A stretch of DNA of 64,000 nt from sequence record MW825358.1; one strand, given 5' to 3'. The notes beneath the pieces are model-generated. The model worked only from the letters and a program-made list of their open reading frames with translations. It made no database searches and was not told the DNA's origin. The stretch's first letter is position 1. Each line of letters starts with the position of its first letter. The translations under genes were made by a program, and so were the position numbers. Shown one piece after another: positions 23,601 to 39,653 of the stretch.

Positions 23601-26600
23601 CAAGCCGACCATGACCATTGCCAAGTTGAGTGATGGTACAGAAGGTAGCACGGGTCCTGGCTTTAGACTGACGGCCAACCGTCTGTCCAAGACCGCCACT
23701 AATGTGATCTTGGCTTACAGCGGTACAGCCACGGCAGGTACGGACTATACGGCACAAACCACAGTCACCTTGCCGGCTATGGCCAACAACGTGGACTTCT
23801 ACCTCTCGGTAGTGGATGACATGGTCAATGAAGGCAATGAGACCGTCATTGTCACGATCCAGCCGGATAATGCCTACACCGTGGGCGGTATGTCAAGTGC
23901 CACAGCCACGATCATTGATCGACACATCAATCCGAAGATTACGATCGCAGCTGCGGCTGCGCAGGTCACCGAAGGCGGTACGTTGAATGTCCGTATCAGT
24001 GCCGATCGTGCTCCGACCTCGGATCTGACTGTACAGCTGCAGTACGGCGGCACTGCGGTGCGGGGAACCGACTACACGCTCAGTTCTTCCACACCAACGG
24101 CAATGGTCCTACCAGCTGGCAGTACTACGTTGGATTTCACCATCACTGCCACGGCAGATCAGCTGGTGGAGCCAGAAGAGTCCATCGTCATCACAGTCGT
24201 CTCGGCCTCCGGTTACGACGTGGGTGATCCGGCTAGTACCACGATCCGCTTGCTGGATAATGATGGTACACCGACCGTCTCCATTGCGCGTAGCGGGCAG
24301 GAGAATGTCAATGAAGGTGACCGTGTAAACTTCACAGTAAGCACCACTAAGGCTTGGTCTACGGCGCGGCAGGTCAACCTGACCTTTGCAGGTACGGCCA
24401 CCAAGGGGACAGACTACACCTTGGTCAATGACTACGTCACAATCCCGGCAGGTCAAACCAGTGTTCAGGCGTATGTGGATATCGTCGATGACACGGCGGT
24501 GGAAGCAGATGAGACAATCATCTTGGGCATTGCGACCAATGCGGCCTACACGGTCAGTTCCACCAATGGCTCGATTCAGTACACGATCCTCAATACCGAT
24601 TCCTACCAGCGTCCGGTGGCTTCAATCACCAACCTCAGTAGCCAGTCGGTGGATGAGTCTCGCACTGAACCGCTGACCATGACGGTGGGCATTGGCTCTG
24701 TCCAAGGCACGGATACGACGGTCTATATCGCCTACAGTGGCACAGCGACTAAGGGTACCGATTACACGGCACCTGATTCGGTGGTGGTCCCGGCAGGACA
24801 GATCTCTGTCACTGCACAGATCCAGATCATCAACGATACGACCTACGAGTCCAGCGAGACGATCATCATCAATGTTCAGGCCAACGCCGCATATGACATT
24901 GCAGGTTCGCAAACGCCCATCACGATCACGATCGTGGATGATGACGGTCCTACGCAGGCGACCTTCAGTAGCTCCACGTATAAGGCGCCCACGCAGACCT
25001 TGTCTGACTCGAACCGTCGCACGACAGCCAACACCGATGTGGCAGGCTTTGTCTTGACAGACACTGTCAAGCGCACTGGTAAGTACTACGTAGAGTTGAC
25101 GTATATGGCCCAAGCCACAACCTCCTCCACCTCGTGTGCGGCAGGTATTGTGGTGGGTGCACCGGTGAATCTGACAGCTTACCTGGGCTCGCACAGCAAC
25201 GCCTACGGTACCTGGGCAGAAGGTACGGGTATCGACCGTCGTTGTAGCTACAACAACGCCTCGGCGACCAATGCCACCACAGGCAACGGTGCCCCGGCGG
25301 TGGGTCAGGTCTTCCGTATTGCGGTGGACATCGACGCCGGTCGAGTGTGGTTGGGTCGCTTGGGTAGTTCGGCTTGGTTAGGCGGTGGTGATCCTGCCAC
25401 TAACACCAGTCCGACCTACACCTTCACACCTAACTCAGTGGTGCGCTTTGGTGCTAACCCGCGTGGTGTGGACGGTTCGGTCTCGATTCGCGCCTACAAC
25501 GCATGGGTGTATGCGGCACCGGCAGGTTTTGGTATCTGGGACAATGTCTCGCAAGAGAATTGGCCGCGTGTGTCTACGGTCAACTACGGTTCGGTCCAGG
25601 AAGGCAATCCGATGACCTTCCAGCTGACGCTGGACAAGGCTGCTGCCGCAGACTTGCCGGTGAACTTGAGTTACGGTGGCACGGCAGTGAGGGGTACAGA
25701 TTACACCGCACCGACCTCACGCACTGTCACGGCAGGTAACTTGACCCAGCAATGGTCCATCAATACAGTCCCAGACAACAGCGCCTCCACCAACAAGACC
25801 TTGACTGTGACGGTCAACCCCGGCCCTGGTTACATCGTCGGTTCGCCGGCCACCGGTTCAGGTACGATCACCAACAACGCTGCGGAAAATCCGTTTGTCA
25901 ACACGGTGGCTCCGGCAGTGTCGGGTAATACGACCCCAGGCAGTACGTTGACAGTGTCTAACGGTACTTGGACAGGCGGTACGATCACCAGCTACGGGTA
26001 TGAGTGGTACCGCAATGGTTTCTTAACTGCGGTGAAAACACAGACCTACGTGATCGCTGCTAATGACGATATCGATACGGAGTTCTTCGCTCGGGTCTAT
26101 GCGAAGAGCGCTCGTCAGAACGTCCCGGCACAGTCTAACACGGTCAAGGTGACCGCACCGCCGGCTTCACTGCCGATGACGGCCACCTTTGTGGGCGCTG
26201 ACAACACGGATGTGACCACTCACGACTCGCGTCTGTCGTATATGGGCGATGTCTCCCCGATCTCGCTGATTATCGAGAATAATCAGATGGCCCCGGGTAA
26301 TGATGTCGGCGGTGCACAGTGTGTCTTCTTCAACAATGCGAAGATGACCCAAGGTGCACGCTCGTCTAAGATCACCATCGGTGGGACGGACAACAGCAGC
26401 TTCTTCTTGATCACGCTGATGACCGATGGCACGATGAGCCGTTACATCCAGTGGTATGGTACCAGCGGCTTTGCGGCGATCTACTGCCGCACCGGTGGTG
26501 AGGAAATGGAAGTGCCCAGCTCGGCACACTACCCGACCATTGTGGCCGGTGACGTGCTGGAGTTGAGTATCAATGCGGCCAATGATCAGCTGACCTTTAA

Positions 26601-26745
26601 GGTCAATGACGTGGTGGCTTGGACTGGTGCAATTCCGTCTAATATGGTTCCGGTGGGCGAGTACAGTGGCGCTGGTTACTACAGCGCTTCTCCGTACGAA
26701 GCTGCTCGAATTGTGGACATCACCATTAACGGTACGTTGAAGTAA
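20680..26745 (+). CDS. giant virion fibre/appendage protein: anchor domain + GTA-type TIM barrel + Calx-beta repeats + SPRY + Ig + lectin-like
   Basis: N-terminal domain shared with 26824 and the 49-52 kb paralogs; GTA TIM motifs (GSTPSDAS, YPFLMMD, FLIGSEM, YAADWSEY, IGIDNYLP, WFTEFGC, PNVFLDPKS.ES); ~7 GTDYT-type Calx-beta units; GKYYVEL SPRY motif. Confidence 0.85.
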   Translation: MSQIPSDVLQYLLDELNERQGLALTKADVTLSSPAAYAGGVRNTEVRLTAATNSGAALTVLIHYTRLDLEVLFDELSLTFEDFGATSTHGLLQTLGDLRGVTLDPAEFIDSPIERPEDADTLLVTLQPRPGSLTFTGSLPVTLNLFPSNTVPLASLIDPVSPKLIATAGVSTTQELAAWLNTTYDLNIEVAEIQNEPLVSSYTEGYNHQVTLAAKAGSKFYTGDADVTYREGYQLIRGVTLIPSTGASAYSTVPQTRFQGSTSRGVENVNTNTGKTDVVVSLEQLSESLPLCETVSVVIAWFGDDQRAGVCTITPRLGVQGTENLTLRYEPDDWSVAGVTPANALKTSVVAGSNVYGSTPSDASIIQVIQHLKSLGKRVVFYPFLMMDIQSNNTKPNPYWDGYQSPNVWRGRVSCYPAPGVTIKGVSSPDGTAEAGNQIDTFFNSEWGFKRYINHYRDLCVQAGGVDAFLIGSEMIGITHVRSAANTFAAAAHLKELAAGVKAAMPNCKVSYAADWSEYHSKQYSNGDLKFPLDEVWADPNIDFIGIDNYLPIADCRADQDPALCHDIDYLKSHIEGGEYYDYYYIDRTAGTTGAITDGGGKPWVYRQKDIRGWWSNRHYPRNAYNETSTPTAWLAGSKPVWFTEFGCAAVDRGPNQPNVFLDPKSFESALPYFSTGEVDMLAQQAYITAMVEYWTEHGGAMISPENMIAWTWDARPFPQFPQLTTVWGDGGNYLGGHWVQGRLPDSIPVMTIAAGSDGVAGSPVNYTLTLDKPSLIDLIVNLGYGGTAVSGTDFTPRTTVTVPAGQTSFNFTIATIDTGFGEDVHTLRVSVVKGFGYKLGVPKDATLSITDKPWPEVPPVPSITLVGVGGNRNENAGTKQFTIVLSERTTIDLVVPIAYNTGAAVSSTYGDDYTGPATVTVPANTLQQNFNVSIVDDNIYEGNESARTTIQAGTGYTLGSTVSVVWTILDNDAKPTMTIAKLSDGTEGSTGPGFRLTANRLSKTATNVILAYSGTATAGTDYTAQTTVTLPAMANNVDFYLSVVDDMVNEGNETVIVTIQPDNAYTVGGMSSATATIIDRHINPKITIAAAAAQVTEGGTLNVRISADRAPTSDLTVQLQYGGTAVRGTDYTLSSSTPTAMVLPAGSTTLDFTITATADQLVEPEESIVITVVSASGYDVGDPASTTIRLLDNDGTPTVSIARSGQENVNEGDRVNFTVSTTKAWSTARQVNLTFAGTATKGTDYTLVNDYVTIPAGQTSVQAYVDIVDDTAVEADETIILGIATNAAYTVSSTNGSIQYTILNTDSYQRPVASITNLSSQSVDESRTEPLTMTVGIGSVQGTDTTVYIAYSGTATKGTDYTAPDSVVVPAGQISVTAQIQIINDTTYESSETIIINVQANAAYDIAGSQTPITITIVDDDGPTQATFSSSTYKAPTQTLSDSNRRTTANTDVAGFVLTDTVKRTGKYYVELTYMAQATTSSTSCAAGIVVGAPVNLTAYLGSHSNAYGTWAEGTGIDRRCSYNNASATNATTGNGAPAVGQVFRIAVDIDAGRVWLGRLGSSAWLGGGDPATNTSPTYTFTPNSVVRFGANPRGVDGSVSIRAYNAWVYAAPAGFGIWDNVSQENWPRVSTVNYGSVQEGNPMTFQLTLDKAAAADLPVNLSYGGTAVRGTDYTAPTSRTVTAGNLTQQWSINTVPDNSASTNKTLTVTVNPGPGYIVGSPATGSGTITNNAAENPFVNTVAPAVSGNTTPGSTLTVSNGTWTGGTITSYGYEWYRNGFLTAVKTQTYVIAANDDIDTEFFARVYAKSARQNVPAQSNTVKVTAPPASLPMTATFVGADNTDVTTHDSRLSYMGDVSPISLIIENNQMAPGNDVGGAQCVFFNNAKMTQGARSSKITIGGTDNSSFFLITLMTDGTMSRYIQWYGTSGFAAIYCRTGGEEMEVPSSAHYPTIVAGDVLELSINAANDQLTFKVNDVVAWTGAIPSNMVPVGEYSGAGYYSASPYEAARIVDITINGTLK

Positions 26746-26748
26746 CAG

Positions 26749-26786
26749 AACAGAGCCCCTCCGAAAGGAGGGGCTCTGTTTTATGG
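26749..26786 (+). terminator. hairpin-TATG element after the 2021-aa gene
   Basis: aacagagcccctcc-gaaa-ggaggggctctgtt-ttatgg. Confidence 0.7.
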
Positions 26787-26789
26787 CGT

Positions 26790-26799
26790 TAATTTATGA
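26790..26799 (+). promoter_or_regulatory. late-promoter candidate TAATTTATGA
   Basis: Identical to 20643. Confidence 0.4.
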
Positions 26800-26823
26800 T
26801 GTAACCCTTTAATAGGAGTCCTT

Positions 26824-27336
26824 GTGTCTAACCTACCATCTGATGTGATACAGACTTTGTTGGACGGGATCAACCGCGAGTGTGCCTTGAGCCTGACCAA
26901 AGATCAGGTGGTGTTTGGCACACCCGAGCCTTCCACCCAACAAGGTCGTAATACCAAAGTCCGGGTTGAAGCTGCCTCGGTACATCTTGTCATCTCAGCT
27001 TACTACTACCGTTTGGAACTGTCGAGGTTGCTGAGCGATATCAGCAGGACCTTTCCAGATGAAGGCCAGGCCAATACTCTGGATTTAATTCCTCAGATTG
27101 CGGCCCGTCGTCAATTGAGTTTCAATGTTGATGACTTTGTTTCCACTCCGATCGAGCGTACCGAAGGTCAGCCCACGTTGGTGACCCTACAAGCCCGCGC
27201 GGATTCTTTGACGTTGTTAGGTGCAGTCGAGATTACGCTGGGCGCAGTTAACACGGTTCCTGATAATGCTTTGCTGACACGAGAAGGCGACCCCATCTAT
27301 ACGCGGGAAGGCGACTTCCTATTTGTTTCGGAGTGA
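26824..27336 (+). CDS. stand-alone anchor/adaptor protein (paralog family)
   Basis: AGGAG SD, GTG start; same domain as the N-terminus of 20680; ends LLTREGDPIYTREGDFLFVSE. Confidence 0.8.
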   Translation: MSNLPSDVIQTLLDGINRECALSLTKDQVVFGTPEPSTQQGRNTKVRVEAASVHLVISAYYYRLELSRLLSDISRTFPDEGQANTLDLIPQIAARRQLSFNVDDFVSTPIERTEGQPTLVTLQARADSLTLLGAVEITLGAVNTVPDNALLTREGDPIYTREGDFLFVSE

Positions 27337-27339
27337 TGT

Positions 27340-30300
27340 ATGCCACACGTACACGAGCTACCGTCTGTTTCACCCCAGACCGTAGCCGATTTGCGCAATG
27401 TCACAGGGATTGTGCTGCTGGAGCAAACCGTACAGCAAGTACAAACGGATTTGGGTGAAGCCCAGGATCTGGCCCAAGCAGCATCAACTGCTGCCTCTAC
27501 GGCCACCACTACGGCTAACACCGCCAAGACCACGGCCGATACGGCCAAGACCACCGCTGATACCGCAGCCGGCAATGCCAGTACTGCTTTACAAGCTGCC
27601 AACGTAGCGGTTGCCGCAGCTGCTGAGGCCAGCACTGCGGTGGAGGAGGCTCAAGATCAGATCGATACTGCTGTGGCCGATGCAGCAACAGCTAAGACCT
27701 TGGCGACCTCAGCCAATACGGCGGCCAGCGCTGCTGACACCAAAGCCACCAATGCAGGCACAGCTGCCAGTAATGCGCAGACCACAGCCACTGCAGCGCA
27801 GACCGCAGCAGGTAACGCACAGACGGCGGCCAACACTGCTCAAGCAAAGGCCGATGCTGCCGATACCAAGGCCAATAACCTGCGTACCGATTTGGATTCT
27901 CTGACCGATACGGTCCAGGCGATCCAAGATCAGATCGGTGGTGTCAACCAAGTCCCGGTGGCCACACCCATCACCATTGATGTGGATGAGGACACAGTCA
28001 ACTACCAAGGTAGCGTGTTCGACCACGTAGTGGACCCTGACGGTGATGACATGGTGGTGGTGGAATCCACCTACAACAGCACCAAGTTCAATGCCGGCAC
28101 CCAGTTCAATACTGTCTACGGCACGATGCTGGTGGCAGTCAACGGTAACTACACTTTCACCCCCAACGCCACCGCGCAAGCTTTGAATGACGGAGAGACC
28201 GGTACGGTTGCCTTTGCCATTCTCGTGCGTGATGCCCGCGGTGGTACGGCGACGTGGAACCTCACCATTCGTGTGATCGGTTCAACGGATGAGGCCGGCG
28301 GTGGAGATGATGATAACACCACCTTTGATGCCCTGTATGACCCCAGCTTCAAACTGATTGAAAATCAGAACTTCTACTCGCGCCCGACAATGTCCAAGCC
28401 GAGTAAGATGACCAGCTACACACAGCCGAGCTATACCGATCCGGTGTTTGGAACCAAGATCTTTGGTCTGACCCGCGTCAATGATACCTCGGACAATATC
28501 ACCAACTTGCGCCACGTCTATTCGCGTCAAACGGCGATCAATGCCGATAACACGCGCTCGATCGTGCGTGCCGGTAACGGTTGGTGGCATTTGTATAACC
28601 TGCAAACCGGTCAGCGTATTTTGGGTGGACGTACCCAAACGCCAGGCTTTGGTGCGCTGGTGGATTTCATCAACGAATGCGAATGCGTCTGGCATCCGAC
28701 CAACCCCAAGAAGCTGTGGCGTACCGGTAACCAAGGTGCGGGGTGCATCTGGTATGAATACGACATCGATACGATGACCACCACGGTCCTGTTTGACCTC
28801 AACCCGCTGCTGCAAGCGCTGGGTGGGGCTTGGGCCAATGCTGGGCGTGCCTGGTTCAAGGGCGAAGGTCGTCCTTCGAACGATGGTCGCTGGTGGGGCT
28901 TCCAGGTGGAAACGGCCAGCTATGGAATGATCGGCTTGATCATGTACGATCGCCAGACCAACACCATCGTCGGCAGTGCACTGACCACCAACCGTCCCGA
29001 CCACGTTTCAACCTCACCGCTGGGTAACTATATCGTGCCATCTTGGTACGGTGGTACGACCGAAACGCTGGCGTCCTCGGCCACCCGTCCGATGAATGAA
29101 GCCAACGGTGCACGTGCTTACTCGCGTGACTTCTCTTCCTTTACGCAGCTGTCCTCGTTGGGTGAGCACTCAGACTTGGCCATCGATGCGCAAGGTAATG
29201 AAGTGTTTGTCTCGGTGTCCTACCGTGGCGGCACCTCAGGTCAAGAACCTGACGTGGCTGACGGTGGCATCTACTATCGCCGGATGGATAACGGTGTGGC
29301 CTACTCGCTGCCGGGTAATGCCTACCAAGACTCCTCTGACGGTGGTGTGCACTTGTCAGGCCTTGCCACCAAGAAGCCTGGTTGGGCGGTGGTATCCTGG
29401 TATGGCGGTACGCCTAAGACGTGGAAGGACGGTGTGGTCTATGCGGTGGAGCTGACCCCGGATAACCCCAAGACCTTACGTATCTGTCACCACCAGACGG
29501 TGGCCCAAGGTGCTGAGGCGTATATCGCCGAATCCCACGCAGTGCCCTCGCCTGATATGTCCATGATCCTGTTTGCCTCCAACTATGGTGGCAGCGTGGT
29601 GGAAGACTACTACGTGGGTCTGCCTTCGTGGGCCTTTGGTGTGGCAGGCGCAGGTCGCCCGCCGGTAAACCAAACCCTGCCGGCAGTCTCAGGACAAGTC
29701 ACCCCCAATGCGGTGTTGACCTGTACGGCGGGCATGTGGTCCGGTGTGGGGATTACCTACAGCTACCAATGGTACCGTGACTCTGGTACGATCATCAGTG
29801 GTCAGACCACCAACAGCTTCACCATCCCTTCAGGGGCAGCGGCAGGTACGCAGTACTACTGCCGTGTGACAGCCACCAATGCCACCGATACGGTTTACGC
29901 TGAGTCCAACAAGATCACCGTGCAGGTTCCTTCTGCGCCGGTCAACACGGCCAAGCCCACCATCACCGGTGGTTCGGCAGTGGGTAGCTTGCTCACAGCG
30001 CAGCCGGGTACGTGGTCGGGTCTGCCGACGCCGGACTTTACCTATGCTTGGTATCGTAACGGGACAGCGCTGGGTGTCACCACGCGCACCTATACGGCCA
30101 ATGATCTGGGTGACTACACGGTCCAAGTCCGGGCCGAGAACACCCAAGGTTTTGCAACGGAGATGTCCACGGTCAAGACGATCGTGGCCGCCGCAGATCC
30201 CAAGGCTGCGGTGGGTTCGCCGGTGAACACCACTAATACATGGCAGTCCTCCGGCAGTATTGCCGTACCGTCAGTGGCAGTGGGTGATTCGATTCTGTTG

Positions 30301-30858
30301 GTGGTGAGCCTGGATGAGGGCAGTGGTGATGGTAACTTGAACTCGATCACGGCCACCGTGCTCGGCAAGCCCTTGAACCTGCTCTACTCCACTCCGTTGA
30401 TCACTCTGTCCTCTGGTCGTATGGTGCGTCAGCACTACTACGTGGCAGATAAGGTGACCGCGGCCGGTACAGCCACGATCAATGTGACCTTTGAGGCCAA
30501 CACGCATTACGCTATGCAGGCCCAGCGCTTCACCGGTGGTATTGCCACGGTGGATGTCACAGCGCCGGGTGGCTTTAATGCCACAGCGTTTGCCACACCA
30601 CATCCGACCGGTACGGTCAGTGCGACCATCGCCAACTCCGTTGAGGTCATCAGCTTGGTCGGCGCCACGGACATGTCCAATGCGGCATTGACTTTGCCCT
30701 CTGGCTTTACCTCGATGGGTGCAGACAACGTGGGTCCGTTGGTGGCGATCACTGGCTATCGCGTGCGCACCACAATCGGCAACATCGGCGGTACGATTAC
30801 CTCGATGAATGGCGGTTATGGTTCGGGCTGGGCAGCTTCTGCCTTGAACTTGTACTAA
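27340..30858 (+). CDS. fibre protein: Ala/Thr coiled coil + VCBS/cadherin-like Ig + propeller-like domain + Ig repeats
   Basis: A/T-rich heptads, GTMLVAVNGNYTFTP (VCBS-like), Trp-rich ~440-aa domain, two PVN..P..SG..LT...G.WSG..Y.WYR Ig-like repeats. Confidence 0.75.
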   Translation: MPHVHELPSVSPQTVADLRNVTGIVLLEQTVQQVQTDLGEAQDLAQAASTAASTATTTANTAKTTADTAKTTADTAAGNASTALQAANVAVAAAAEASTAVEEAQDQIDTAVADAATAKTLATSANTAASAADTKATNAGTAASNAQTTATAAQTAAGNAQTAANTAQAKADAADTKANNLRTDLDSLTDTVQAIQDQIGGVNQVPVATPITIDVDEDTVNYQGSVFDHVVDPDGDDMVVVESTYNSTKFNAGTQFNTVYGTMLVAVNGNYTFTPNATAQALNDGETGTVAFAILVRDARGGTATWNLTIRVIGSTDEAGGGDDDNTTFDALYDPSFKLIENQNFYSRPTMSKPSKMTSYTQPSYTDPVFGTKIFGLTRVNDTSDNITNLRHVYSRQTAINADNTRSIVRAGNGWWHLYNLQTGQRILGGRTQTPGFGALVDFINECECVWHPTNPKKLWRTGNQGAGCIWYEYDIDTMTTTVLFDLNPLLQALGGAWANAGRAWFKGEGRPSNDGRWWGFQVETASYGMIGLIMYDRQTNTIVGSALTTNRPDHVSTSPLGNYIVPSWYGGTTETLASSATRPMNEANGARAYSRDFSSFTQLSSLGEHSDLAIDAQGNEVFVSVSYRGGTSGQEPDVADGGIYYRRMDNGVAYSLPGNAYQDSSDGGVHLSGLATKKPGWAVVSWYGGTPKTWKDGVVYAVELTPDNPKTLRICHHQTVAQGAEAYIAESHAVPSPDMSMILFASNYGGSVVEDYYVGLPSWAFGVAGAGRPPVNQTLPAVSGQVTPNAVLTCTAGMWSGVGITYSYQWYRDSGTIISGQTTNSFTIPSGAAAGTQYYCRVTATNATDTVYAESNKITVQVPSAPVNTAKPTITGGSAVGSLLTAQPGTWSGLPTPDFTYAWYRNGTALGVTTRTYTANDLGDYTVQVRAENTQGFATEMSTVKTIVAAADPKAAVGSPVNTTNTWQSSGSIAVPSVAVGDSILLVVSLDEGSGDGNLNSITATVLGKPLNLLYSTPLITLSSGRMVRQHYYVADKVTAAGTATINVTFEANTHYAMQAQRFTGGIATVDVTAPGGFNATAFATPHPTGTVSATIANSVEVISLVGATDMSNAALTLPSGFTSMGADNVGPLVAITGYRVRTTIGNIGGTITSMNGGYGSGWAASALNLY

Positions 30859-30891
30859 GCATATTGCCCCTGCTTCGGCAGGGGCTTTATG
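30859..30891. terminator. CATA-hairpin-TATG element
   Basis: gcatatt-gcccctgc-ttcg-gcaggggc-tttatg. Confidence 0.65.
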
Positions 30892-30991
30892 TTGTTTTCT
30901 ATTTTTACCCCCTATTAGATGTGATTTCACACACCTCAGTGGAATCAATGCAGAGCCCTCTACAACCCCCCTTATTAGAAAGGCGAGAATA

Positions 30992-33121
30992 ATGACTGCA
31001 TATGAACGTGGCGTTGCCCTGTCAGGAATGGAGAATCGAAGCTCCACGCTGCCAGGCAAAGCCAACACCGACTACCTGGTGCCACGCGAAAAGGATTTTG
31101 CGTATTTCTCAAGCAAGGGATTTACTCTGATTCGACTGGCGATCACCTGGGAGCGCATGCAGCCTTCGCTCTTTGGCCCGTTGGACCCGGCCTTTAAGAA
31201 GCACGTTGATGCGTGTATCGAATTGGCCAAAAAGTACAACATGCGCATCTTGCTCGAACCGCATAACTACGGCGGGCGACGCGTCAACGGGGTCGGATAC
31301 AAGATCGGCACTCCGCAAGTGACGGTAGAGGCCTTTGCCGATTTCTGGGGGAAGGTGGCCATGGCCTACTCAGATGAGGAAGGCATCTACGGCTATGACC
31401 TGATGAATGAGCCACACACCATGCCAGTGGGCTGTACGCCGCTGACCTACCATCCCTCCAAGTTTGACTACATCACCAATCCGCGCTTTGAAGATGGAAA
31501 GTCCGGTTGGAGTATGGACAGCGTCTTTAAGATCGGCGATCAATGCGCCGAGTTTGACATCACTGGAGGTTGGGCCAATCTGACCTCGTACAATGCCAAG
31601 GGTGGCGGTATCCCGGTCGTGCCGGGGGCGACAGTGACCATCGAGTTTGACTACGAGTTGGAGATCACCTCAGGAAACGGTCCGCGCTTTCGCATTAGCT
31701 ACGGTGATAATGCCGCCTACGGAACGGAGATCTCAGGCACAGGTAAGACCTTAGGCAAAACCGTGGGCAAGGCCACCCACAAGGTCACCTTTACCGTGCC
31801 AGATAAAGCTGACATGGTCTGGCTGCGTTTCCAGAACCAGGGCGGTAATGTCAAGGGTAAGGTGTCTAATTTCCGCTACAGTGCCAGCTCCCTACCCAAG
31901 CGCCAGGTCGCCACCACCACCTTGATGAACCAAGCGGCCATTGACGCCATTCGCGCTGTGGATTTGAAGCATTGGATTGTGTTGGAGTTTGACCGTTACA
32001 CCGGCCTGGCTTCTTTCGGTGCCAACTTTGGTACGAACCCGGAAGTGTGGTGGTCTGATCCGGTCAACAAGACCATGCCTTCGTTCCACTACTACCAAGA
32101 CAGTGATTACAGCGGCTCTTACACCAAGGCTTGGACGCAAGGGTTGCGCGATCGCATGGAAGCTCAAGTGCGGTTGGTGTTTGACTGGGCCAAGCGTAAC
32201 AAGGTGACGGTGTTTATGGGCGAGTACGGCGTGCCTAACACTGAGGACAGTTCAGGCGAGAACTACCGCCAAGATCTGGATGCGTTTTTGACGCTGATGG
32301 ATGAGTACGCCATTCCGGGTACGTACTGGTCCGCAGGCTGGGGTTATACCTCACCGACTACGATCCACCCCACCGAGAACTATACTGTCGATCGCAAGGT
32401 TTTGGCCACGGTCCTGAAGCATCTGGGAAAGAAGGACACCCCGCCCACACCACAGCCGATTCCCTATGACCCGGAAACTGATCCGGCACTGTGGAAGGTG
32501 GATGATCTGGTGCGCCTGTCCTTTGGTGCTTCGTATAAGCGCCCAGAGGCCAATGCCAATGCATTCGTTTTTGAATGCAAGAACGTCAAGGTAGGCGATG
32601 TCCTCTCGCCCAACCTTAAGTGCACCCAAGGTCAGTTGATCGGGGCACGTTTGTCAATGGCTTCGATCTCTCTGCCGTATCGTAACTTTGCCTCTGGCAA
32701 GAACGGTCCGAATGATCGTCACCTTCCGCCGCATGCCTTGGGCGAGGAGACACGTGAGTTCTGGTATGGTAAGGGTAGCGTGCCGATGATCTTCCGGTTG
32801 GACAATGTTCCACCTGGGGTCTATGAGGTGGTCGTGGGTGGCGCTGCCCCCAGTACGGGTGTTTCAGATCTGTTCAAGGCCACGGTGAGCTTCCCGGCCG
32901 GGAAAGGAACAGGCGGTGTGTATGATGCCGATGGAGCCAAACCTGCCGGCAGTGATCAATGGTATTTCATCAGCAGTGACGTTGAACCTGTCAATGGTAT
33001 CTTGGACGTTAGTGTCGTGGCCGCCGTGGCAGGCGGACAGGCGTGTGTGAGTTTCATCACCCTGCGGCGCTTAAGTGCTCCGGTGCAGTATGAGACCTAT
33101 TTGCGGGAATTAGCAGCATAA
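30992..33121 (+). CDS. GH5 endoglucanase with inserted CBM4/9-like module and C-terminal beta-sandwich
   Basis: IRLAITWERMQP, EPHNY, YDLMNEP (acid/base Glu), HYY, GEYG (nucleophile Glu), YWSAG; insert YITNPRFEDGKSGW. Confidence 0.85.
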   Translation: MTAYERGVALSGMENRSSTLPGKANTDYLVPREKDFAYFSSKGFTLIRLAITWERMQPSLFGPLDPAFKKHVDACIELAKKYNMRILLEPHNYGGRRVNGVGYKIGTPQVTVEAFADFWGKVAMAYSDEEGIYGYDLMNEPHTMPVGCTPLTYHPSKFDYITNPRFEDGKSGWSMDSVFKIGDQCAEFDITGGWANLTSYNAKGGGIPVVPGATVTIEFDYELEITSGNGPRFRISYGDNAAYGTEISGTGKTLGKTVGKATHKVTFTVPDKADMVWLRFQNQGGNVKGKVSNFRYSASSLPKRQVATTTLMNQAAIDAIRAVDLKHWIVLEFDRYTGLASFGANFGTNPEVWWSDPVNKTMPSFHYYQDSDYSGSYTKAWTQGLRDRMEAQVRLVFDWAKRNKVTVFMGEYGVPNTEDSSGENYRQDLDAFLTLMDEYAIPGTYWSAGWGYTSPTTIHPTENYTVDRKVLATVLKHLGKKDTPPTPQPIPYDPETDPALWKVDDLVRLSFGASYKRPEANANAFVFECKNVKVGDVLSPNLKCTQGQLIGARLSMASISLPYRNFASGKNGPNDRHLPPHALGEETREFWYGKGSVPMIFRLDNVPPGVYEVVVGGAAPSTGVSDLFKATVSFPAGKGTGGVYDADGAKPAGSDQWYFISSDVEPVNGILDVSVVAAVAGGQACVSFITLRRLSAPVQYETYLRELAA

Positions 33122-33285
33122 ACCAGCAGCCCCTTCCGTCAGGGAGGGGCTGCTATGTTCTCGATTAAAATAAATCTCAAACGCAAACTATCTAGGTGAG
33201 CACCAGTGGTAAAAATCGAACTGCGCTGGTGATTCGAAAGTTGTCTATATCCATAAACCATCCTCACCATTTAAGGAGCTAATAA

Positions 33286-33633
33286 ATGTCCGTACCCGCC
33301 AACAAGATTCGCAAACCCCGCAAGGCCATCACCCGTATCAACCCCAACGTCAGCGAGATCGAAGAGCAGATCCTGGAGCGCGAGCGCTTCCGTGTGATCC
33401 TGCGTCTGCCGACGTTCCTGGCCGCCGCCCATTCCCCGGACGGCTATCACTACAAGCGCGCCTTGGGTGATGAACAGACCATCGCCCACCTGTACGAGCG
33501 CCTGTATCGGGTCTTCGGTGAAGCTGTGTCTTTCGTGGTCATCTACAACGATGGCCGCGTGATCAATGTGGTGCCTGGCAAGATGGCCCACATGTCCGTC
33601 GAACTGGGTCGGGTGCGTAAAGTCCCCGAGTAA
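33286..33633 (+). CDS. hypothetical basic protein
   Basis: AAGGAG SD, AT-rich upstream region, strong C-ending codon bias. Confidence 0.7.
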   Translation: MSVPANKIRKPRKAITRINPNVSEIEEQILERERFRVILRLPTFLAAAHSPDGYHYKRALGDEQTIAHLYERLYRVFGEAVSFVVIYNDGRVINVVPGKMAHMSVELGRVRKVPE

Positions 33634-33746
33634 GTCCCTGCAAGTGCAAGTCCGCAAGAACCTACCTCTCACGTATTCACGCCCAGTGTGAGAGGTAGGC
33701 GTAGTGCCCGTAACAAACCCCTTCAACTCTAGCCCAAAGTCTTAAC

Positions 33747-35174
33747 ATGAAATCCCGTAACACTGCTTTGCTGTTCTTGATCTCTGTTTTGAGCTTCACT
33801 TCTCCCGCATTCGGTCAGCAGGCCCAGCCCTGTCCCGAAGGCGTGACCAGTTGTACGGTCTCCAACCAGAACCAAGGTGATGTGGACAATTCGTCCTCGG
33901 CCAACGGTTCGCAGTCGGAAGCCTCGCAGTCCAACAACAGTACCAATGCCATCCAGGCCGGCAACTCGCAGAACGCCAACTACGACAACTCGGCCCAGAC
34001 CACCCAAAACGCCACCAACACCACCACCGGTACCATCAGTGGCGGTAACACCTCCTCCACGGCAACCGGCGGAGCGGCAACGGGTGGGGCAGCCATCGGC
34101 AATACCAGTGACAATGACAACCGTTCTTCGGTTGGCAACGTCTCGGCCAGCACCGGTCCTTCCACCTCCAACTCAGGCGGTAACGTCCTGGGTTCGAACT
34201 CGGGTGGGAACGATCTGTCCAATGGTGTGCAGATTGGCGATACCAAAACTGGTGATGTGAAAAACACCATCGGTAATTTGACCACTGGTCCTTCCACAGC
34301 CACGGTAGGCAATACCAGCGCTGCGGGTGGCAGTGTAGGAAACACCACCGCCTCTGGTGGTAATTCCTCGGTAGGCAATCTGTCCAACGGTTCAAATTCC
34401 ACCATCGGTGATACCGATTCGTCCTCGCGTTCGAATTCCTCGGTGGGTAACACCTCCTCCGGTTCGACCTCCAGTGCGAATGGGACCAACACCAGTCGAA
34501 ACGACAACTCCATTGCCGGAGGTAACACAACCAGTAACACCGGCGGTAATAGCCTGAGTAATGGCTCGCGTTCCAGCAGCGGCGGCAACACCATGACAGG
34601 TGGTGCCACCAACTCCGGTGCCGCAGCCAACAACTCCGGTGGCAACAACGCAGTCACTGTCGATAGCTCCAGTCACAGCAACTACAAGGCGATTTTCATC
34701 CCCTCGGTCGTGCCGGTCACCCCACCTTCGCAGGTGCAGATCGGCAATATCGTCAAGGAGACTTCGGCCTGTGGTCCGCTGCAATCGGTGGTCAAGACCC
34801 CGATTGAAGGTACGGTCATCAGCTTCTGGCGTAAGGTGAAGGTCAACCAGGGTTACACCTATGACCTGGCTCCTAACTACGATGCCAAGGGTGATTTCCA
34901 GCCGTATCTGATGGTGCCAATTGGCGACCGCCCGGGCATGCGTATGTTTGGTCACCAGAAGGTGATCTTTGCATCGATGGCCGGTATTTCCTCCAACAAG
35001 AACTTCGCCCTTGGCGGGGGCGGTAACGAAGGCGGTTGGGGTCAGGCGGGTATGGGCAGTTCTTCTGCCAATACTCAGCTGGTGACCAACATCCAACTGC
35101 TGCTGTGTGAGATCGGCACGATCGAGCCGGAGATCCAGTACATCGAGCGCCCCTACCAGGGCGGTCTGAGGTAA
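33747..35174 (+). CDS. secreted Ser/Asn/Gly/Thr-rich repeat protein
   Basis: Sec signal peptide (..SPAFG|QQ); ~270 aa of (V/I)G(N/D)xS and SGGN repeats; folded C-terminal domain. Confidence 0.8.
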   Translation: MKSRNTALLFLISVLSFTSPAFGQQAQPCPEGVTSCTVSNQNQGDVDNSSSANGSQSEASQSNNSTNAIQAGNSQNANYDNSAQTTQNATNTTTGTISGGNTSSTATGGAATGGAAIGNTSDNDNRSSVGNVSASTGPSTSNSGGNVLGSNSGGNDLSNGVQIGDTKTGDVKNTIGNLTTGPSTATVGNTSAAGGSVGNTTASGGNSSVGNLSNGSNSTIGDTDSSSRSNSSVGNTSSGSTSSANGTNTSRNDNSIAGGNTTSNTGGNSLSNGSRSSSGGNTMTGGATNSGAAANNSGGNNAVTVDSSSHSNYKAIFIPSVVPVTPPSQVQIGNIVKETSACGPLQSVVKTPIEGTVISFWRKVKVNQGYTYDLAPNYDAKGDFQPYLMVPIGDRPGMRMFGHQKVIFASMAGISSNKNFALGGGGNEGGWGQAGMGSSSANTQLVTNIQLLLCEIGTIEPEIQYIERPYQGGLR

Positions 35175-35177
35175 TCC

Positions 35178-35528
35178 ATGGAGCCCATCACCGTCTTTAT
35201 CGGTAAGGCACTGCTGTGCATGGGGATGAGCTGCCAGCCTGTGCTGGTCGGTCCCAATACCCATCCTGGCCAATACCAGATGCATGTGCTGCATACCCAG
35301 CAGCCGGGCTATGGTGGCGATGTGTTGATGTATGATAGCGACCAGAAACATTGGTTTGCCATTCATCGCACCTACACGTTGGATAAGCGCCGCAATCGTG
35401 CCAAGCTTTATCACGGCACCAGTGCCAAGCAGCGTAAGGTGACCAGCGGGTGCATCAATGTGGAACCGTGGCTGTATGAACAGCTGCGCGAAAACCACCG
35501 CACTCGACCCTTGGTGATCCTGCCGTAG
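35178..35528 (+). CDS. minimal L,D-transpeptidase (YkuD-like) protein
   Basis: FAIHRT ... VTSGCINV catalytic His/Cys pattern. Confidence 0.7.
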   Translation: MEPITVFIGKALLCMGMSCQPVLVGPNTHPGQYQMHVLHTQQPGYGGDVLMYDSDQKHWFAIHRTYTLDKRRNRAKLYHGTSAKQRKVTSGCINVEPWLYEQLRENHRTRPLVILP

Positions 35529-35619
35529 TCCGTAGCATAGACAGCCTCCTACCCTTGGCGGGGTAGGAGGCTGTCTTTCTATGCCTTTTCTTTTGGCCTA
35601 ACCTAAAAATTCATGCAAA

Positions 35620-35638
35620 TATACTATCGCTGTGTAGT
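35620..35638 (+). promoter_or_regulatory. early-promoter-like motif TATACTAT-N4-GTGTAGT
   Basis: AT-rich upstream tract; precedes 35689. Confidence 0.55.
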
Positions 35639-35688
35639 CACGTCCACTGGGACCATGCGCACTACACTTAAGAAACCATCTATTCCTA

Positions 35689-36936
35689 ATGAGGACATGT
35701 GAGATGATCGAGCGGGCATTTGAAATACAAATCGAGAACTGGCTGAACGGACCGACCTTTGATGCTGAAGTCTACGAACGACAGACTCAGTCAAGTACAG
35801 ACAAAAAGCGCACGCCCATTGCCAAGATCAGCTATACGATCCAGGTAGGGCGGCCGGCTAAGATGCAAGTCATCGAAACCGATGGTGCGCGTGATACTTT
35901 CTTAGAGCAAGAGGACATCGACGTCCCCTTGCTGTTCCTACTGCGTTGCATCGGCGCGATCAGTAAGATGTACAACATTGCTCCAGAGCAGGTGAGCTTT
36001 GGTGATCCGGGTAGTGTGCTCGAAACTGCATTTACTAGACCCTGGCGTAACTGGGGTCCTGAGCAACAAGCTCGCGCCGATGCGAAGTGGGAGTTCTTTG
36101 GCACCAACTTCATGATGGCCGACCCGAACCTGGTGGAATACCGCCCGGAGTGGGAAGGCGAACATGGCGCCATGACCTATGCCATCTTTTGGTTGAACGA
36201 GCATTGGAAATCTCCCATGAATGCCCAAGGGATGATCTCTCATCCTGACGGGCGCATTGACCTGTGGAACTACTCTGCGGCCACTGGGATGTTGTATCAC
36301 CGTAACCGTCAAGGGGCCAGGGCTGAGATCACAATCGACAAGATGATGATCATCAAAGAAGGTGACCGCGAAAACGCCACGATCTATCGTCCTTTCTATC
36401 GGGAAAAAGACGGGGAGATGAAGATGCAGTGGTTGGCCACGCGTGAGGTCAAGATCGTCTCAAACCATTGGGAAGACGAAGCCCCGATGAATTTGCGGGA
36501 ACTCCTGCGCCGACTCCGTGAGCGTCTTGAAAATCATCCTTTCGCAGAGTTTCCCGACTTGCGCCTGTGTGGGTCGAAGGATCTGATTGATACATCTAAC
36601 ATCACCAAGAACCAAACGACCACACTTGAGCAGGCCAAGATCTATCAGGACCTTCTCATTTACTTCCAACGGTTCAAGACCCATCGCCCTTATCGCCGAG
36701 CACATTTTGCCGAGTACATGGCATTTTCCAAACTGATCATTCAACTGATGCAGCTGGTCTTGAAGATCGATGCACCCAGCGCGGTGAGTAAGTGGCGAGA
36801 TTTCATCGTCAATGTCTCGGCAGGCTATATCAATCGCACTAGGACCCCCGACCTTGAAGCTGTGAAAATGCTTCGCAATATGTCTGAGGTGGGTAGTTCC
36901 TGGAAAAAGAATAAGGAGGAATCTTCCGATGAGTGA
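35689..36936 (+). CDS. hypothetical protein
   Basis: 415-aa ORF downstream of an early-promoter-like motif. Confidence 0.75.
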   Translation: MRTCEMIERAFEIQIENWLNGPTFDAEVYERQTQSSTDKKRTPIAKISYTIQVGRPAKMQVIETDGARDTFLEQEDIDVPLLFLLRCIGAISKMYNIAPEQVSFGDPGSVLETAFTRPWRNWGPEQQARADAKWEFFGTNFMMADPNLVEYRPEWEGEHGAMTYAIFWLNEHWKSPMNAQGMISHPDGRIDLWNYSAATGMLYHRNRQGARAEITIDKMMIIKEGDRENATIYRPFYREKDGEMKMQWLATREVKIVSNHWEDEAPMNLRELLRRLRERLENHPFAEFPDLRLCGSKDLIDTSNITKNQTTTLEQAKIYQDLLIYFQRFKTHRPYRRAHFAEYMAFSKLIIQLMQLVLKIDAPSAVSKWRDFIVNVSAGYINRTRTPDLEAVKMLRNMSEVGSSWKKNKEESSDE

Positions 36937-37522
36937 AGCACTATACAAGCGTCCGTATCTGATCCAGCGCATGCAGGCGCGCTCTAAGAACAATCAGGTC
37001 CGCCTGGGAGAGCGTTACAGTAATGAGTACATGGGCGCTTCTGAGTTTGAGCGCGGCACGATGGCCCAGACTTTAAAGTCCATGCACGGCTTTGTCGATC
37101 ACGGCCAGTTCCAAGTCGGGGAGCTGACCATCTACGCGGCCTGGGATCATCGCAACTACAACAGTGCCGGCGTCCAGCTGGTCTTGGACGGTCTGTGGAA
37201 TGGACAGTTCCGTACCAAAGAGTGGTTGAACTTCTCCCTGAAGAAATATGTCGAGCAGCAACGGGCGGTGAAGGAGATGCGTCTATCCCCCATGGCGCGC
37301 TCTGCCGATTATACCGATGCCTGGTTTGATATCGACCATGGTCTGTTTTGGACCTGGCAGAAGATCAACCTCAAGGACATCGTGCTGAATATCGCCAAGT
37401 CCCACGCTTGGATGAGCTTGTCTGAAGGAGAGCGCCGGGCCGCGCAGTTTGAAACGCACGGCAGGGCGACCTTGCAAGGGGCACTGGGTCCGATTGCCGA
37501 TCAGCTCCGCAATCGGGGTTAG
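36929..37522 (+). CDS. hypothetical protein
   Basis: AAGGAGG SD; 197 aa. Confidence 0.75.
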   Translation: MSEALYKRPYLIQRMQARSKNNQVRLGERYSNEYMGASEFERGTMAQTLKSMHGFVDHGQFQVGELTIYAAWDHRNYNSAGVQLVLDGLWNGQFRTKEWLNFSLKKYVEQQRAVKEMRLSPMARSADYTDAWFDIDHGLFWTWQKINLKDIVLNIAKSHAWMSLSEGERRAAQFETHGRATLQGALGPIADQLRNRG

Positions 37523-37572
37523 TGCGCCAAGTAAGCGGTATTGTATAACAGGGGACCACCAGGAACGCAACC

Positions 37573-37851
37573 ATGGGGCTAGCAGTAAAACTCGAGCTGA
37601 CTCGCAAGAGCCGCACCGAGATCAAACCGATCAACCGCCAGCAAGCTTACTACTTGCTCTTCAACGTTTACAGTGCTCGCTACGGTACCGCAATCCGTTA
37701 CGAGAACCCGCGCACGATGCGTGTGAAGATCTTGGAGTTGCAAGCTCATCTTGACACTGTTCGCCTTAGTATGCCGGCGGTCTATCAAGCACTTGCTCGA
37801 CAGATCACCGACTACGAGCGGATTTGCGCCATCCTGGAAATGCTTGGTTAA
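37573..37851 (+). CDS. hypothetical protein
   Basis: CAGGA SD; followed by a hairpin element. Confidence 0.65.
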   Translation: MGLAVKLELTRKSRTEIKPINRQQAYYLLFNVYSARYGTAIRYENPRTMRVKILELQAHLDTVRLSMPAVYQALARQITDYERICAILEMLG

Positions 37852-37964
37852 CCCATTGACCCCACCTGCCCTTAAAGCGGGTGGGGTTTATGCCGGTGAT
37901 TAGGTAAATCCTTATTCCACCTTTAGATAGTTTGAACCACTCAAAGTACAACGAAGGAATCGAG

Positions 37965-39653
37965 ATGTCCGAACAAATGCAGCCCGTCGGCACCAGCGTG
38001 CAGATGGCGTCGAAAATCAACTACCGCTTTGACCCGTTCTTACTTTCCTTGCACGTAGCCAGCAGTAAGGCGCTGAACGCCAGCGTGATAGGGCGTGACC
38101 AGCGGGCTCGAATTGGCTATGCCGCCGATATCTCAGGACGCGATATCTACGCGCTGTATCTGGCGTCTTTCCCCGAGGGTCCTGACCGTCTGGAGCACAC
38201 TTGCCGGTGCTGTCAAGACTTCTTTCGCCTCTACGGCAATCTGTTGCTGATCAATGAAGCCGGCGAGACCGTGTCGGCTTTGTTCTCCGATGACGGCCGC
38301 ACGCCTCAAGAGTATCGGGCATTTGTGGAAGCTGCCTCCCAGAAACTGGCTGGTGCCAAGGTCGGTTTACTGGAAGTCTCGCAACGCCCCGATGGTTACC
38401 TTCTCATCGGTAAGGCCCAGGCCGGTGGGTTCCATCATTTCCATTACGCCCTGCCGAAGGTGATGAATCGTCCCGACCTGACGCTCTCGGCAAAGCAGAA
38501 TGCGAAAGAGTACCGCGAGGATGCGCGCCTGCTGACCGAGTCGCTCTCGCGATGGAGAGAAGAAACGCTCCAACAGGCCATGGCCGCTTTCCAGAATGAT
38601 GAACATCTCTCCCGGACCATCCACGCCGAACACCTGACCAATTTCATGGCCATCCGGGCACAGAACCGGATCATCGCGGACCGGCGCCAGCGCCTCAACC
38701 ATCTGACTGTTGCCACTACCTTGTACTCCAAGGGTGTGGTGCGTATCGGACAGACGGTGTTGGGAGAATTCTTGGATCGTTTGGAAGTGACCAATTCTCT
38801 GCAATCTGCCAAGTCTCGCTTTTTGGTCATGATCGATCCGAAGGACTATCTGCGTCCTAAGGCCGCTCCGGCGCAGCAGACCATCGATCGGGCCGAGAAG
38901 ATCTTTGAGCAACTGGATCTGGCTCGCTCCTTGGACATGCGCTCGGTAACCCGTCCTGAGATCCTACCGCATGCGTTCTGGCGCCCGCCGCAGGTGTCTT
39001 CGGCACCGGCCAGTGGCGGGATTTTCTCAGGGATCAAGGCCAGGGACGCTTCTCCTGAGCGTGGAAAGCTCTTCGTTCAAGGCCCCACGATGTCCTGGCG
39101 CGGCTTTGTCCGTAAGATCTTGATGCGTCCGGCAGGTCAGGGACAGATCATGCGGTTGTCGGTTAATATCCCCCAGGCCCAATACACCGACCTGGTCACT
39201 GTGGCCACGATGCTCGATCCGAGCGGTGCGCCGTTGATGGGATGGGACAAACCTGAGCGCCGCAACCCTGCGGTGATCTACGGCTACGTCCAACCCACGC
39301 TTCCCCGGGACTGGGGTCTGCAGCCTGGTTGGCAGGACGTAGTGGGCATTGTCCCCAATGTCCCCGAGTGGTTCACTGAGGCAGATGTGGAGCTGGATCG
39401 CCACTTCCTGGTCCTTGCCCAGGGCTATGACAGCCGCGCACACGGCGGGCTGCCGTTGTTTCCGGTCAACTTGCGCCCTGAGTTGCATGAGGTGCGTTCG
39501 GTGATCGAGGCCTATGCCAAGACCAAGTCCATTCAATTCATCGAACAGGGATTGGTGATGAAGGCCTTGCACGGAGGCAGCTGCAGCATGCAGGTACAGA
39601 CCGAGTCCGACGACGGGGCGGTCACCACCTACCTGATCAATTCGTTCGAATAA
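37965..39653 (+). CDS. hypothetical protein with an HxCxCC motif
   Basis: YLASFPEG..EHTCRCCQDF; AAGGA SD before ATG 37965. Confidence 0.75.
   Translation: MSEQMQPVGTSVQMASKINYRFDPFLLSLHVASSKALNASVIGRDQRARIGYAADISGRDIYALYLASFPEGPDRLEHTCRCCQDFFRLYGNLLLINEAGETVSALFSDDGRTPQEYRAFVEAASQKLAGAKVGLLEVSQRPDGYLLIGKAQAGGFHHFHYALPKVMNRPDLTLSAKQNAKEYREDARLLTESLSRWREETLQQAMAAFQNDEHLSRTIHAEHLTNFMAIRAQNRIIADRRQRLNHLTVATTLYSKGVVRIGQTVLGEFLDRLEVTNSLQSAKSRFLVMIDPKDYLRPKAAPAQQTIDRAEKIFEQLDLARSLDMRSVTRPEILPHAFWRPPQVSSAPASGGIFSGIKARDASPERGKLFVQGPTMSWRGFVRKILMRPAGQGQIMRLSVNIPQAQYTDLVTVATMLDPSGAPLMGWDKPERRNPAVIYGYVQPTLPRDWGLQPGWQDVVGIVPNVPEWFTEADVELDRHFLVLAQGYDSRAHGGLPLFPVNLRPELHEVRSVIEAYAKTKSIQFIEQGLVMKALHGGSCSMQVQTESDDGAVTTYLINSFE

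Follow-up and report, generated by a model that had tools for sequence, protein, structure and literature searches.

What does the gene LUCX_247 of a Xanthomonas jumbo phage encode, and what use could the phage have for its product? The gene lies in a 64,000-nucleotide stretch of sequence record MW825358.1, referred to here as the window, in which a position equals the record position minus 186,000. The record is the genome of Xanthomonas phage vB_XciM_LucasX, a 305,651-bp jumbo myovirus that came from the soil of a Brazilian citrus orchard and was isolated on the citrus-canker bacterium X. citri 306. Positions 26000–38000 of the window match this genome with 100% identity, and LUCX_247 is annotated there as a 'hypothetical protein'. 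Here we find that it encodes an intact and, judging from its sequence, probably active retaining endo-β-1,4-glycanase of glycoside hydrolase family 5 (GH5). Its barrel is interrupted by a nested module that resembles a carbohydrate-binding module (CBM), and the barrel is followed by a rare β-sandwich that recurs at the ends of two fibre-type proteins of the same phage. Enzymes of this class are ordinary; what is unusual is the layout, which has gone unannotated.

The Pfam family for GH5 enzymes (PF00150, clan GH-A) matches LUCX_247 in two stretches with an E value of 3.8e-38 (132 bits against a cutoff of 23.5). The catalytic motifs NEP and GEYG occupy residues 139–141 and 410–413, and all eight canonical GH5 residues are present: R48, H91, N139, E140, H366, Y368, E411, and W446. 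These residues are invariant or near-invariant in 16 relatives, with the exception of W446, which is a tryptophan in 12 and a tyrosine in 4 of the 16. The best sequence matches in the Protein Data Bank (PDB) are Cel5A from P. stutzeri (code 4lx4, E=1.4e-38), RBcel1 (4ee9), and XacCel5A from Xanthomonas (4w7u). In all of these alignments, residues 6–148 of the query pair with residues ~14–151 of the solved chain, and residues ~314–489 pair with residues ~157–325. Beginning a few residues past NEP, ~165 residues of LUCX_247 stand where the solved enzymes have ~5.

An AlphaFold model of the whole protein has a predicted local distance difference test score (pLDDT) of 77.9 and contains a single (β/α)8 barrel, most of it with a pLDDT of >85. 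The nearest folds found by Foldseek are P. stutzeri Cel5A, RBcel1, XacCel5A, and the host-species enzymes Xac0029 and Xac0030, with template modelling (TM) scores to the target of 0.83–0.88, and in this search with the full-length model the fungal GH5 endoglucanases rank after the bacterial GH5 endo-1,4-β-glucanases. RBcel1, a GH5_5 enzyme (PMC8900817), is among the nearest solved structures, and the barrel is therefore described here as GH5_5-like and is not assigned more closely. The solved endo-1,4-β-glucanases of this type (4lx4/6r2j, 4ee9, 4w7u, Xac0029 5hos, and Xac0030 5hnn) have the same barrel and the same catalytic residues and match with E values of 1e-38 to 1e-27. They are single-domain, secreted enzymes of ~320 residues with ~20% identity to LUCX_247 over the structural alignment. 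LUCX_247, in contrast, is encoded by a phage, carries ~165 residues nested after NEP and an extra C-terminal domain, and is without a signal peptide, because the protein starts at barrel strand 1 and direct reading of the sequence reveals no hydrophobic stretch in its first 30 residues.

The segment that separates the two barrel pieces is related to carbohydrate-binding modules. The isolated insert of LUCX_247 matches the Pfam family CBM_4_9 (PF02018; CAZy CBM4/9/16/22) with an E value of 6.4e-4 and 20.5 bits, which is under the Pfam cutoff of 25.9 bits. When the 16 aligned family members were scanned singly, six matched this family (best E value 2.5e-13), and the domain order 'Cellulase, CBM_4_9, Cellulase' is recorded among precomputed annotations for two relatives (P0006 and P0011). 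A profile built from seven inserts matches the solved CBM16 modules of the enzyme ManA from Thermoanaerobacterium/Caldanaerobius (2zew, 2zex, 2zey, and 2zez) over ~115 residues, with an E value of 7.9e-6 for 2zez and of 3e-4 to 7e-4 for five further CBM16 entries. The match includes an N-terminal NP.FE..W motif, and both groups belong to the Pfam CBM_4_9 superfamily; the sequence similarity remains remote, and in ManA the modules form a tandem that is appended to a GH5 mannanase/glucanase and not nested within it. In the AlphaFold model the insert is all-β at residues 173–298, and this block has a pLDDT of ~80–96. The conserved residue W173 may be the equivalent of a ligand-stacking tryptophan of CBM16.

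Single-sequence searches with the insert returned little: a phmmer search of the PDB gave a chance match to MazF, and a word-seeded protein search returned the closest relative (P0002) alone. The fold search with full-length LUCX_247 returned only GH5 chains and is therefore uninformative on the insert. We place the insert in the CBM_4_9 superfamily as a CBM16-like module, its predicted fold being derived from homology and from predicted secondary structure. The entries 2ZEW and 2ZEY are family-16 CBMs (PMC11406892), and CBM16 modules bind cello-oligosaccharides as well as manno-oligosaccharides (PMC13357471).

The insert occupies the loop between strand 4 and helix 4, a few residues after the acid/base glutamate. 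In clan GH-A enzymes this loop is situated on the catalytic face, beside the acid/base residue. Since the insert follows directly on that glutamate, it would lie on the catalytic face next to the cleft, as judged from the insertion point alone. The two barrel pieces that flank the insert are contiguous in the solved homologs and are modelled as one domain, which is the layout of an internal CBM. Internal CBMs are documented in GH26 (CBM112, from Bacteroides), GH13 (SusG), GH10 xylanases, and GH148 (PMC13357471), and there a β-sandwich CBM is encoded inside the sequence of the catalytic module, as is predicted for LUCX_247. GH5 is not in the family list of that paper, and no report of an internal CBM in GH5 was found in a literature search of incomplete coverage. 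With this architecture, GH5 joins the few families of glycoside hydrolases in which internal CBMs are known.

A CBM-type insert homologous to that of LUCX_247 follows directly on NEP in 15 of 57 homologs. At the same site, one further relative (P0050) carries a different domain of 177 residues. Seven metagenomic sisters (P0014–P0019 and P0021) have an unrelated insertion of ~190 residues in another loop of the catalytic face, ~40 residues before NEP; they had been candidates for same-site inserts and were rejected, because the insertion is non-homologous and lies in a different loop. P0025 was also rejected as an insert carrier, since it is a tandem GH5 protein. Domain insertions have thus been accepted at two sites in this phage GH5 clade. 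The insert is also found outside the barrel, as in P0024, where its homolog is appended after the barrel and not nested. Two relatives without the insert (P0004 and P0007) fall among insert-bearing proteins in the trees of both barrel pieces, which were built separately by neighbour-joining, without support values; this placement points to two clean losses of the insert. An anti-CRISPR-like gene, resembling AcrF2, adjoins the gene for P0004 on a short contig (L013, 2188–2475).

The family offers a natural series for the question of why CBMs are nested, since the module is nested in some members, appended in another, and lost from others, and sister proteins have a second site of insertion. For the GH26 enzyme with CBM112, deletion of the CBM did not change the kinetics, and the reason for the nesting is unclear (PMC13357471). 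LUCX_247 differs from that enzyme in its GH family, its CBM family, and its setting, a phage instead of the surface utilisome of Bacteroidota. The parallel is that the same type of CBM can be appended (P0024) or lost without loss of the barrel (P0004 and P0007).

Wherever the contig of a relative was examined, the surroundings are those of a phage or prophage. The contigs of P0006 and P0012 are phage-like, and that of P0020 encodes terminase, portal, and capsid proteins. A match was obtained for just two of 50,697 sequenced phage genomes, LucasX and a gut contig named 'Bacteriophage sp.', and IMG/VR contains 10 relatives, 2 of them with the nested form. Cellular genomes were surveyed with eight of the closer sequences as queries against 185,579 species-representative genomes. 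The best 80 of the 179 relative loci found in this way have identities of 23–45% (29–45% for loci that cover both barrel pieces), and the nested form was not seen among these 80. In the loci that cover both barrel pieces, these lie within ~950 nucleotides or less, which is too short for the insert. None of the 80 loci is from Xanthomonas, which argues against a recent capture of the gene from the host. A recent capture is also made unlikely by the low identity to the Xac enzymes and by the base composition, as LUCX_247 has a GC content of 0.552, equal to that of the window, and its four segments are homogeneous.

The C-terminal domain, here called domain X, was folded from an alignment of seven sequences and gave a confident β-sandwich with a pLDDT of 85.4 and a predicted TM score (pTM) of 0.84. 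It has no match in Pfam, and neither the single sequence nor a profile has a sequence match in the PDB. When 1.84 billion representative proteins were searched exhaustively with HMMER, domain X turned up in only seven, namely the GH5 relatives P0002 and P0004 and proteins with Calx-β or DUF7941 domains. Within LucasX, domain X recurs at the C termini of LUCX_178 (31% identity, E=8e-20) and LUCX_179 (29% identity, E=2e-17). Both of these proteins begin with DUF7941, and both match tail-fibre families of the PHROG database. The similarity of domain X to the solved structures of CBM61, CBM35, CBM6, CBM36, and malectin-like domains is distant (E ~1e-4, TM score ≤0.55). It is closer to predicted viral proteins (TMq 0.58–0.64), and one of these, from Vibrio phage Kuja, is named 'Phage tail fibre protein N-terminal domain-containing protein'. 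Taking the sequence matches and the model together, domain X appears to be a fibre-end module joined to an enzyme, and it is probably glycan-binding.

DUF7941 is also the N-terminal domain of LUCX_177, LUCX_244, and LUCX_245. Because it heads LUCX_177, LUCX_178, LUCX_179, LUCX_244, and LUCX_245, it has the look of a virion-attachment module common to a set of fibre-type proteins in LucasX. The genes LUCX_177, LUCX_178, and LUCX_179 are consecutive and occupy positions 156755–164586 of MW825358.1 (L009, 20755–28586). LucasX encodes at least five proteins with DUF7941, yet transmission electron microscopy (TEM) of the phage showed no visible tail fibres (PMC9009655).

An earlier reading of the letters alone (the original prediction) had described a phage-encoded GH5 enzyme with both catalytic glutamate motifs intact, a CBM4/9-like module directly after NEP, and a further β-sandwich at the C terminus, without a signal peptide. 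The family match within a phage genome, the conservation of both motifs in the relatives, the CBM_4_9 and CBM16 matches, the domain model, and the start at barrel strand 1 support this description. What it did not contain is the recurrence of domain X in two LucasX fibre proteins, the existence of a small nested family, seen here only in phage or prophage settings, and the precedent of internal CBMs in other enzymes.

The features of the locus are collected in Table 1. LUCX_247 follows fibre-type genes, as had been noted earlier, and the family matches of the upstream proteins agree. LUCX_244 (window 20680–26745) encodes a protein of 2021 residues with DUF7941, GTA_TIM, and Calx-β domains that matches a 'tail protein' PHROG. 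LUCX_245 (window 26824–27336) contains DUF7941 only, and LUCX_246 (window 27340–30858) encodes a protein of 1172 residues with Ig domains that matches tail-fibre PHROGs and is without DUF7941. LUCX_247 adjoins these tail and fibre-type genes, but a terminator-like hairpin stands in between, and the GenBank record also marks a Rho-independent terminator at this position. A second hairpin just beyond the stop codon of LUCX_247 was read directly from the sequence; it was not called by a consensus scan and is not annotated in the record. Two copies of the 10-bp repeat CCYTATTAGA precede the gene (30910–30919 and 30970–30979), where 0.07 would be expected, and an AAGG-type ribosome-binding site lies between the repeat and the ATG. 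The repeat occurs nowhere else in the window. It was considered as a general promoter motif of the phage and rejected, as within the window it is confined to the LUCX_247 locus. With these flanks, LUCX_247 looks like a transcription unit of its own.

Table 1. Features of the LUCX_247 locus in window coordinates; the last row gives coordinates on contigs of relatives
Feature	Position	Strand	Details
Whole gene LUCX_247 (QVD49317.1)	30992..33121	+	Intact open reading frame, ATG start, 709 aa, without internal stops
GH5 barrel, N-terminal piece	30992..31426	+	aa 1-145: strands 1-4, R48, H91, N139-E140-P141 acid/base motif
Nested all-β CBM_4_9/CBM16-like module with connectors	31427..31927	+	aa ~146-312; β core ~173-298; conserved W173
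GH5 barrel, C-terminal piece	31928..32431	+	aa ~313-480: H366, Y368, nucleophile E411 in GEYG, W446
Pro/Asp/Thr-rich linker	32432..32503	+	aa ~481-504, low model confidence
C-terminal β-sandwich (domain X)	32504..33118	+	aa ~505-698 and short terminal helix
Terminator-like G+C-rich hairpin with T-rich tail	30866..30885	+	8-bp stem, 7 G-C pairs; between LUCX_246 and LUCX_247
Upstream intergenic region	30910..30979	+	Holds both copies of the direct repeat CCYTATTAGA (10 bp), 60 bp apart
Hairpin just 3' of the LUCX_247 stop	33127..33155	+	Stem AGCAGCCCCT / AGGGGCTGCT; possible 3' terminator, weak T tail
GDSL/SGNH esterase genes near GH5 genes or on the contig of a domain X protein	L003 4788-6623; L004 11914-13335; L011 11245-end		

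From the observed architecture, catalytic residues, homologies, and distribution, a depolymerase role is plausible for LUCX_247. With moderate confidence, we infer a β-1,4-glucanase with a nested CBM that is released at lysis and targeted to the cell surface, acting on xanthan as the first choice or on cellulose as the second. The protein would be made in the infected cell and freed when the cell lyses, or alternatively carried loosely on the particles; since it has no signal peptide and no DUF7941 and looks like its own transcription unit, release at lysis is the most likely route. The nested CBM would most likely hold a β-1,4-linked chain or feed it into the active site. Two LucasX tail-fibre proteins, LUCX_178 and LUCX_179, have domain X at their distal end, and the domain therefore probably binds the same host-surface glycan as these fibre ends. 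Bound to Xanthomonas cells or their slime in this way, the enzyme would cut a β-1,4-glucan of the matrix, the xanthan backbone first and cellulose second. The matrix would be thinned around neighbouring cells, and a very large, slowly diffusing virion could spread more easily.

The choice of xanthan is consistent with the host, since X. citri 306 is a plant-associated xanthan producer, as the original prediction had anticipated when it hinted at a host that is plant-associated or makes cellulose or xanthan. The known xanthanases are bacterial enzymes of GH9, GH5, and DUF1080, and no phage xanthanase is among them (PMC10881899). Two of them, MiGH from Microbacterium sp. XT11 and RuGH5a from Ruminococcaceae R.UCG13, belong to the same GH family as LUCX_247, an agreement at the family level only. 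These GH5 xanthanases carry extra non-catalytic modules and, in the R.UCG13 locus, have esterase partners (PMC10881899); they are bacterial and secreted, whereas LUCX_247 is encoded by a phage. Esterase genes also recur among the relatives of LUCX_247. A GDSL/SGNH esterase gene is directly downstream of the GH5 gene in one relative contig and two genes upstream of it in another, and a third is on a contig that carries a domain X protein. Their recurrence in unrelated phage contigs suggests a pairing of deacetylase and glycanase, and deacetylation of xanthan is reported to speed the action of cellulases (PMC10881899).

Several points weigh against a lysis-released enzyme for xanthan. Ordinary cellulases cut only disordered xanthan (PMC10881899), and no feature of the LUCX_247 sequence proves that there is room for the xanthan side chains. 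The closest solved enzymes, RBcel1 and P. stutzeri Cel5A, are tied to bacterial cellulose and not to xanthan. The insertion point, which would place the insert beside the cleft, does not fix its orientation there. A tblastn search with the GDSL esterases of the relatives, a method of low sensitivity, found no esterase partner in the part of the LucasX record from 86 to 300 kb. The metagenomic relatives, and with them the family, may target other glucans. Finally, the paper on LucasX does not mention the LUCX_247 protein, nor does it mention cellulase, depolymerase, plaque halos, or virion mass spectrometry (PMC9009655).

A serious rival is that the enzyme is bound to the virion, as a component of the LucasX tail or baseplate that is docked through its C-terminal domain or a partner and clears exopolysaccharide on approach. 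The position of the gene and the relatives that are fused to fibres give this rival its weight. LUCX_247 comes directly after the tail genes LUCX_244 and LUCX_245 and the fibre-like LUCX_246, and the closest relative, P0002, has the same position, following a protein with DUF7941 and GTA_TIM. In P0020 the unit of GH5 and CBM is fused to an N-terminal region that matches tail-fibre families, and in P0014 and P0019 related barrels are fused to tail-spike or tail-fibre parts, with C termini of the tail-spike or K1-lyase type. P0010 is encoded near a GpJ-like tail tip, and the gene for P0011 has Mu-like head genes on one side and tail genes on the other. In these respects LUCX_247 resembles the tail-spike and fibre depolymerases of phages, being a phage enzyme encoded next to tail genes that is predicted to cleave a polysaccharide and has relatives fused to fibre and spike modules. 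The typical depolymerase, however, is a trimeric β-helix with an N-terminal anchor, and LUCX_247 is a TIM barrel without one. Its sequence opens with barrel strand 1, without the DUF7941 of the five fibre-type proteins of LucasX, and a strong terminator-like hairpin stands between its gene and the fibre gene. In the fibres that have N-terminal anchors, domain X is the distal and not the docking end, and the micrographs show no fibres. We regard attachment to the virion as possible but doubtful. The original prediction had left the choice between a virion-associated and a lysate-released depolymerase, and the first is the weaker of the two, because LUCX_247 has no DUF7941 anchor and is set apart by hairpins.

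A second rival keeps the enzyme and changes its target, to bacterial cellulose or some other glucan or mannan with β-1,4 links in the envelope or biofilm of the host. Plain endo-1,4-β-glucanases are the nearest solved enzymes, and for two of them a function together with bacterial cellulose synthesis has been proposed; the insert family extends across metagenomic phages that are unlikely to all infect xanthan-producing hosts. Set against this, the known host has xanthan as its dominant exopolysaccharide, and the esterase genes near the GH5 genes of relatives suit acetylated substrates, xanthan among them, better than they suit cellulose. We hold this alternative only tentatively. Should LUCX_247 be an ordinary cellulase without special specificity, the finding shrinks to a missing annotation.

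A more ambitious form of the xanthan reading is that the family consists of phage-specific, 'receptor-guided' free glycanases, in which the fibre-tip domain would aim the enzyme at the surface glycan that is also recognised by the fibres of the phage, and the nested CBM, at the catalytic face, would let a GH5_5-type barrel act on a branched and ordered polymer such as native xanthan. We consider it unlikely that all of this holds. If it did, LUCX_247 would be the first phage xanthanase, and the nesting of its CBM would have a mechanistic role, unlike that in GH26-CBM112. The occurrence of one rare C-terminal module in two fibres and a free enzyme suggests that phages may aim soluble enzymes by means of receptor-binding parts. 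For Xanthomonas, the surrounding slime of xanthan is the chief physical barrier, and xanthan is also a major industrial polymer; an intact, unannotated GH5 gene in a cultured and published X. citri phage is a concrete candidate for cutting the xanthan backbone.

LUCX_247 could also be an auxiliary metabolic gene or a virulence gene, whose product would act as a cellulase on plant cell walls and so help the infected bacterium to feed on or invade plant tissue. Virus-encoded GH5 enzymes are not new in themselves: one from a rumen virus has demonstrated carboxymethylcellulase activity, and its gene has been interpreted as auxiliary metabolic (PMC10465536). It is a plain protein of ~385 residues from an incomplete viral contig, and it has neither a nested CBM nor a fibre-type module. 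Related GH5 cellulases are secreted by Xanthomonas itself, and the nearest folds include those of Xac0029 and Xac0030. LUCX_247, however, has no signal peptide, and the secretion route of the host is therefore closed to it; LucasX is described as lytic (PMC9009655), and relatives are fused to tail fibres. The C-terminal module that the enzyme has in common with the phage's own fibres points to a bacterial surface and not to plant cellulose. This role is very improbable. Phage receptor-binding proteins sometimes derive from inactivated enzymes, which is the reason for weighing a catalytically dead barrel that serves only as a lectin-like scaffold, but nothing positive speaks for it here, and with all eight canonical residues intact and conserved across the aligned relatives it is barely conceivable.

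The neighbouring genes gave some further observations. The GTA_TIM barrel of LUCX_244 was matched with an E value of 9e-107, together with a faint match to GH113, and the tail module may hold this second glycanase-like barrel besides that of LUCX_247. The protein that resembles a glycoside hydrolase of gene transfer agents (GTA) is called LUCX_291 in the LucasX paper and LUCX_244 in the GenBank record, where LUCX_291 is a different virion protein; the LUCX numbering of the paper and that of the record disagree. LUCX_245 and LUCX_246 are adjacent and in the same frame, one stop codon apart, and joined they would match the layout of LUCX_177, LUCX_178, LUCX_179, and LUCX_244. They could be one gene split in two, a pair joined by read-through, or a fibre made of two parts. 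Downstream, LUCX_250 (window 35178–35528) has a weak match to L,D-transpeptidases (YkuD, E=0.008) and matches phrog_38499. LUCX_249 (window 33747–35174) has a start that resembles a signal peptide, a long region rich in Ser, Asn, Gly, and Thr, and no family match; it is an apparently secreted protein of a lytic jumbo phage, encoded just downstream of the glycanase gene.

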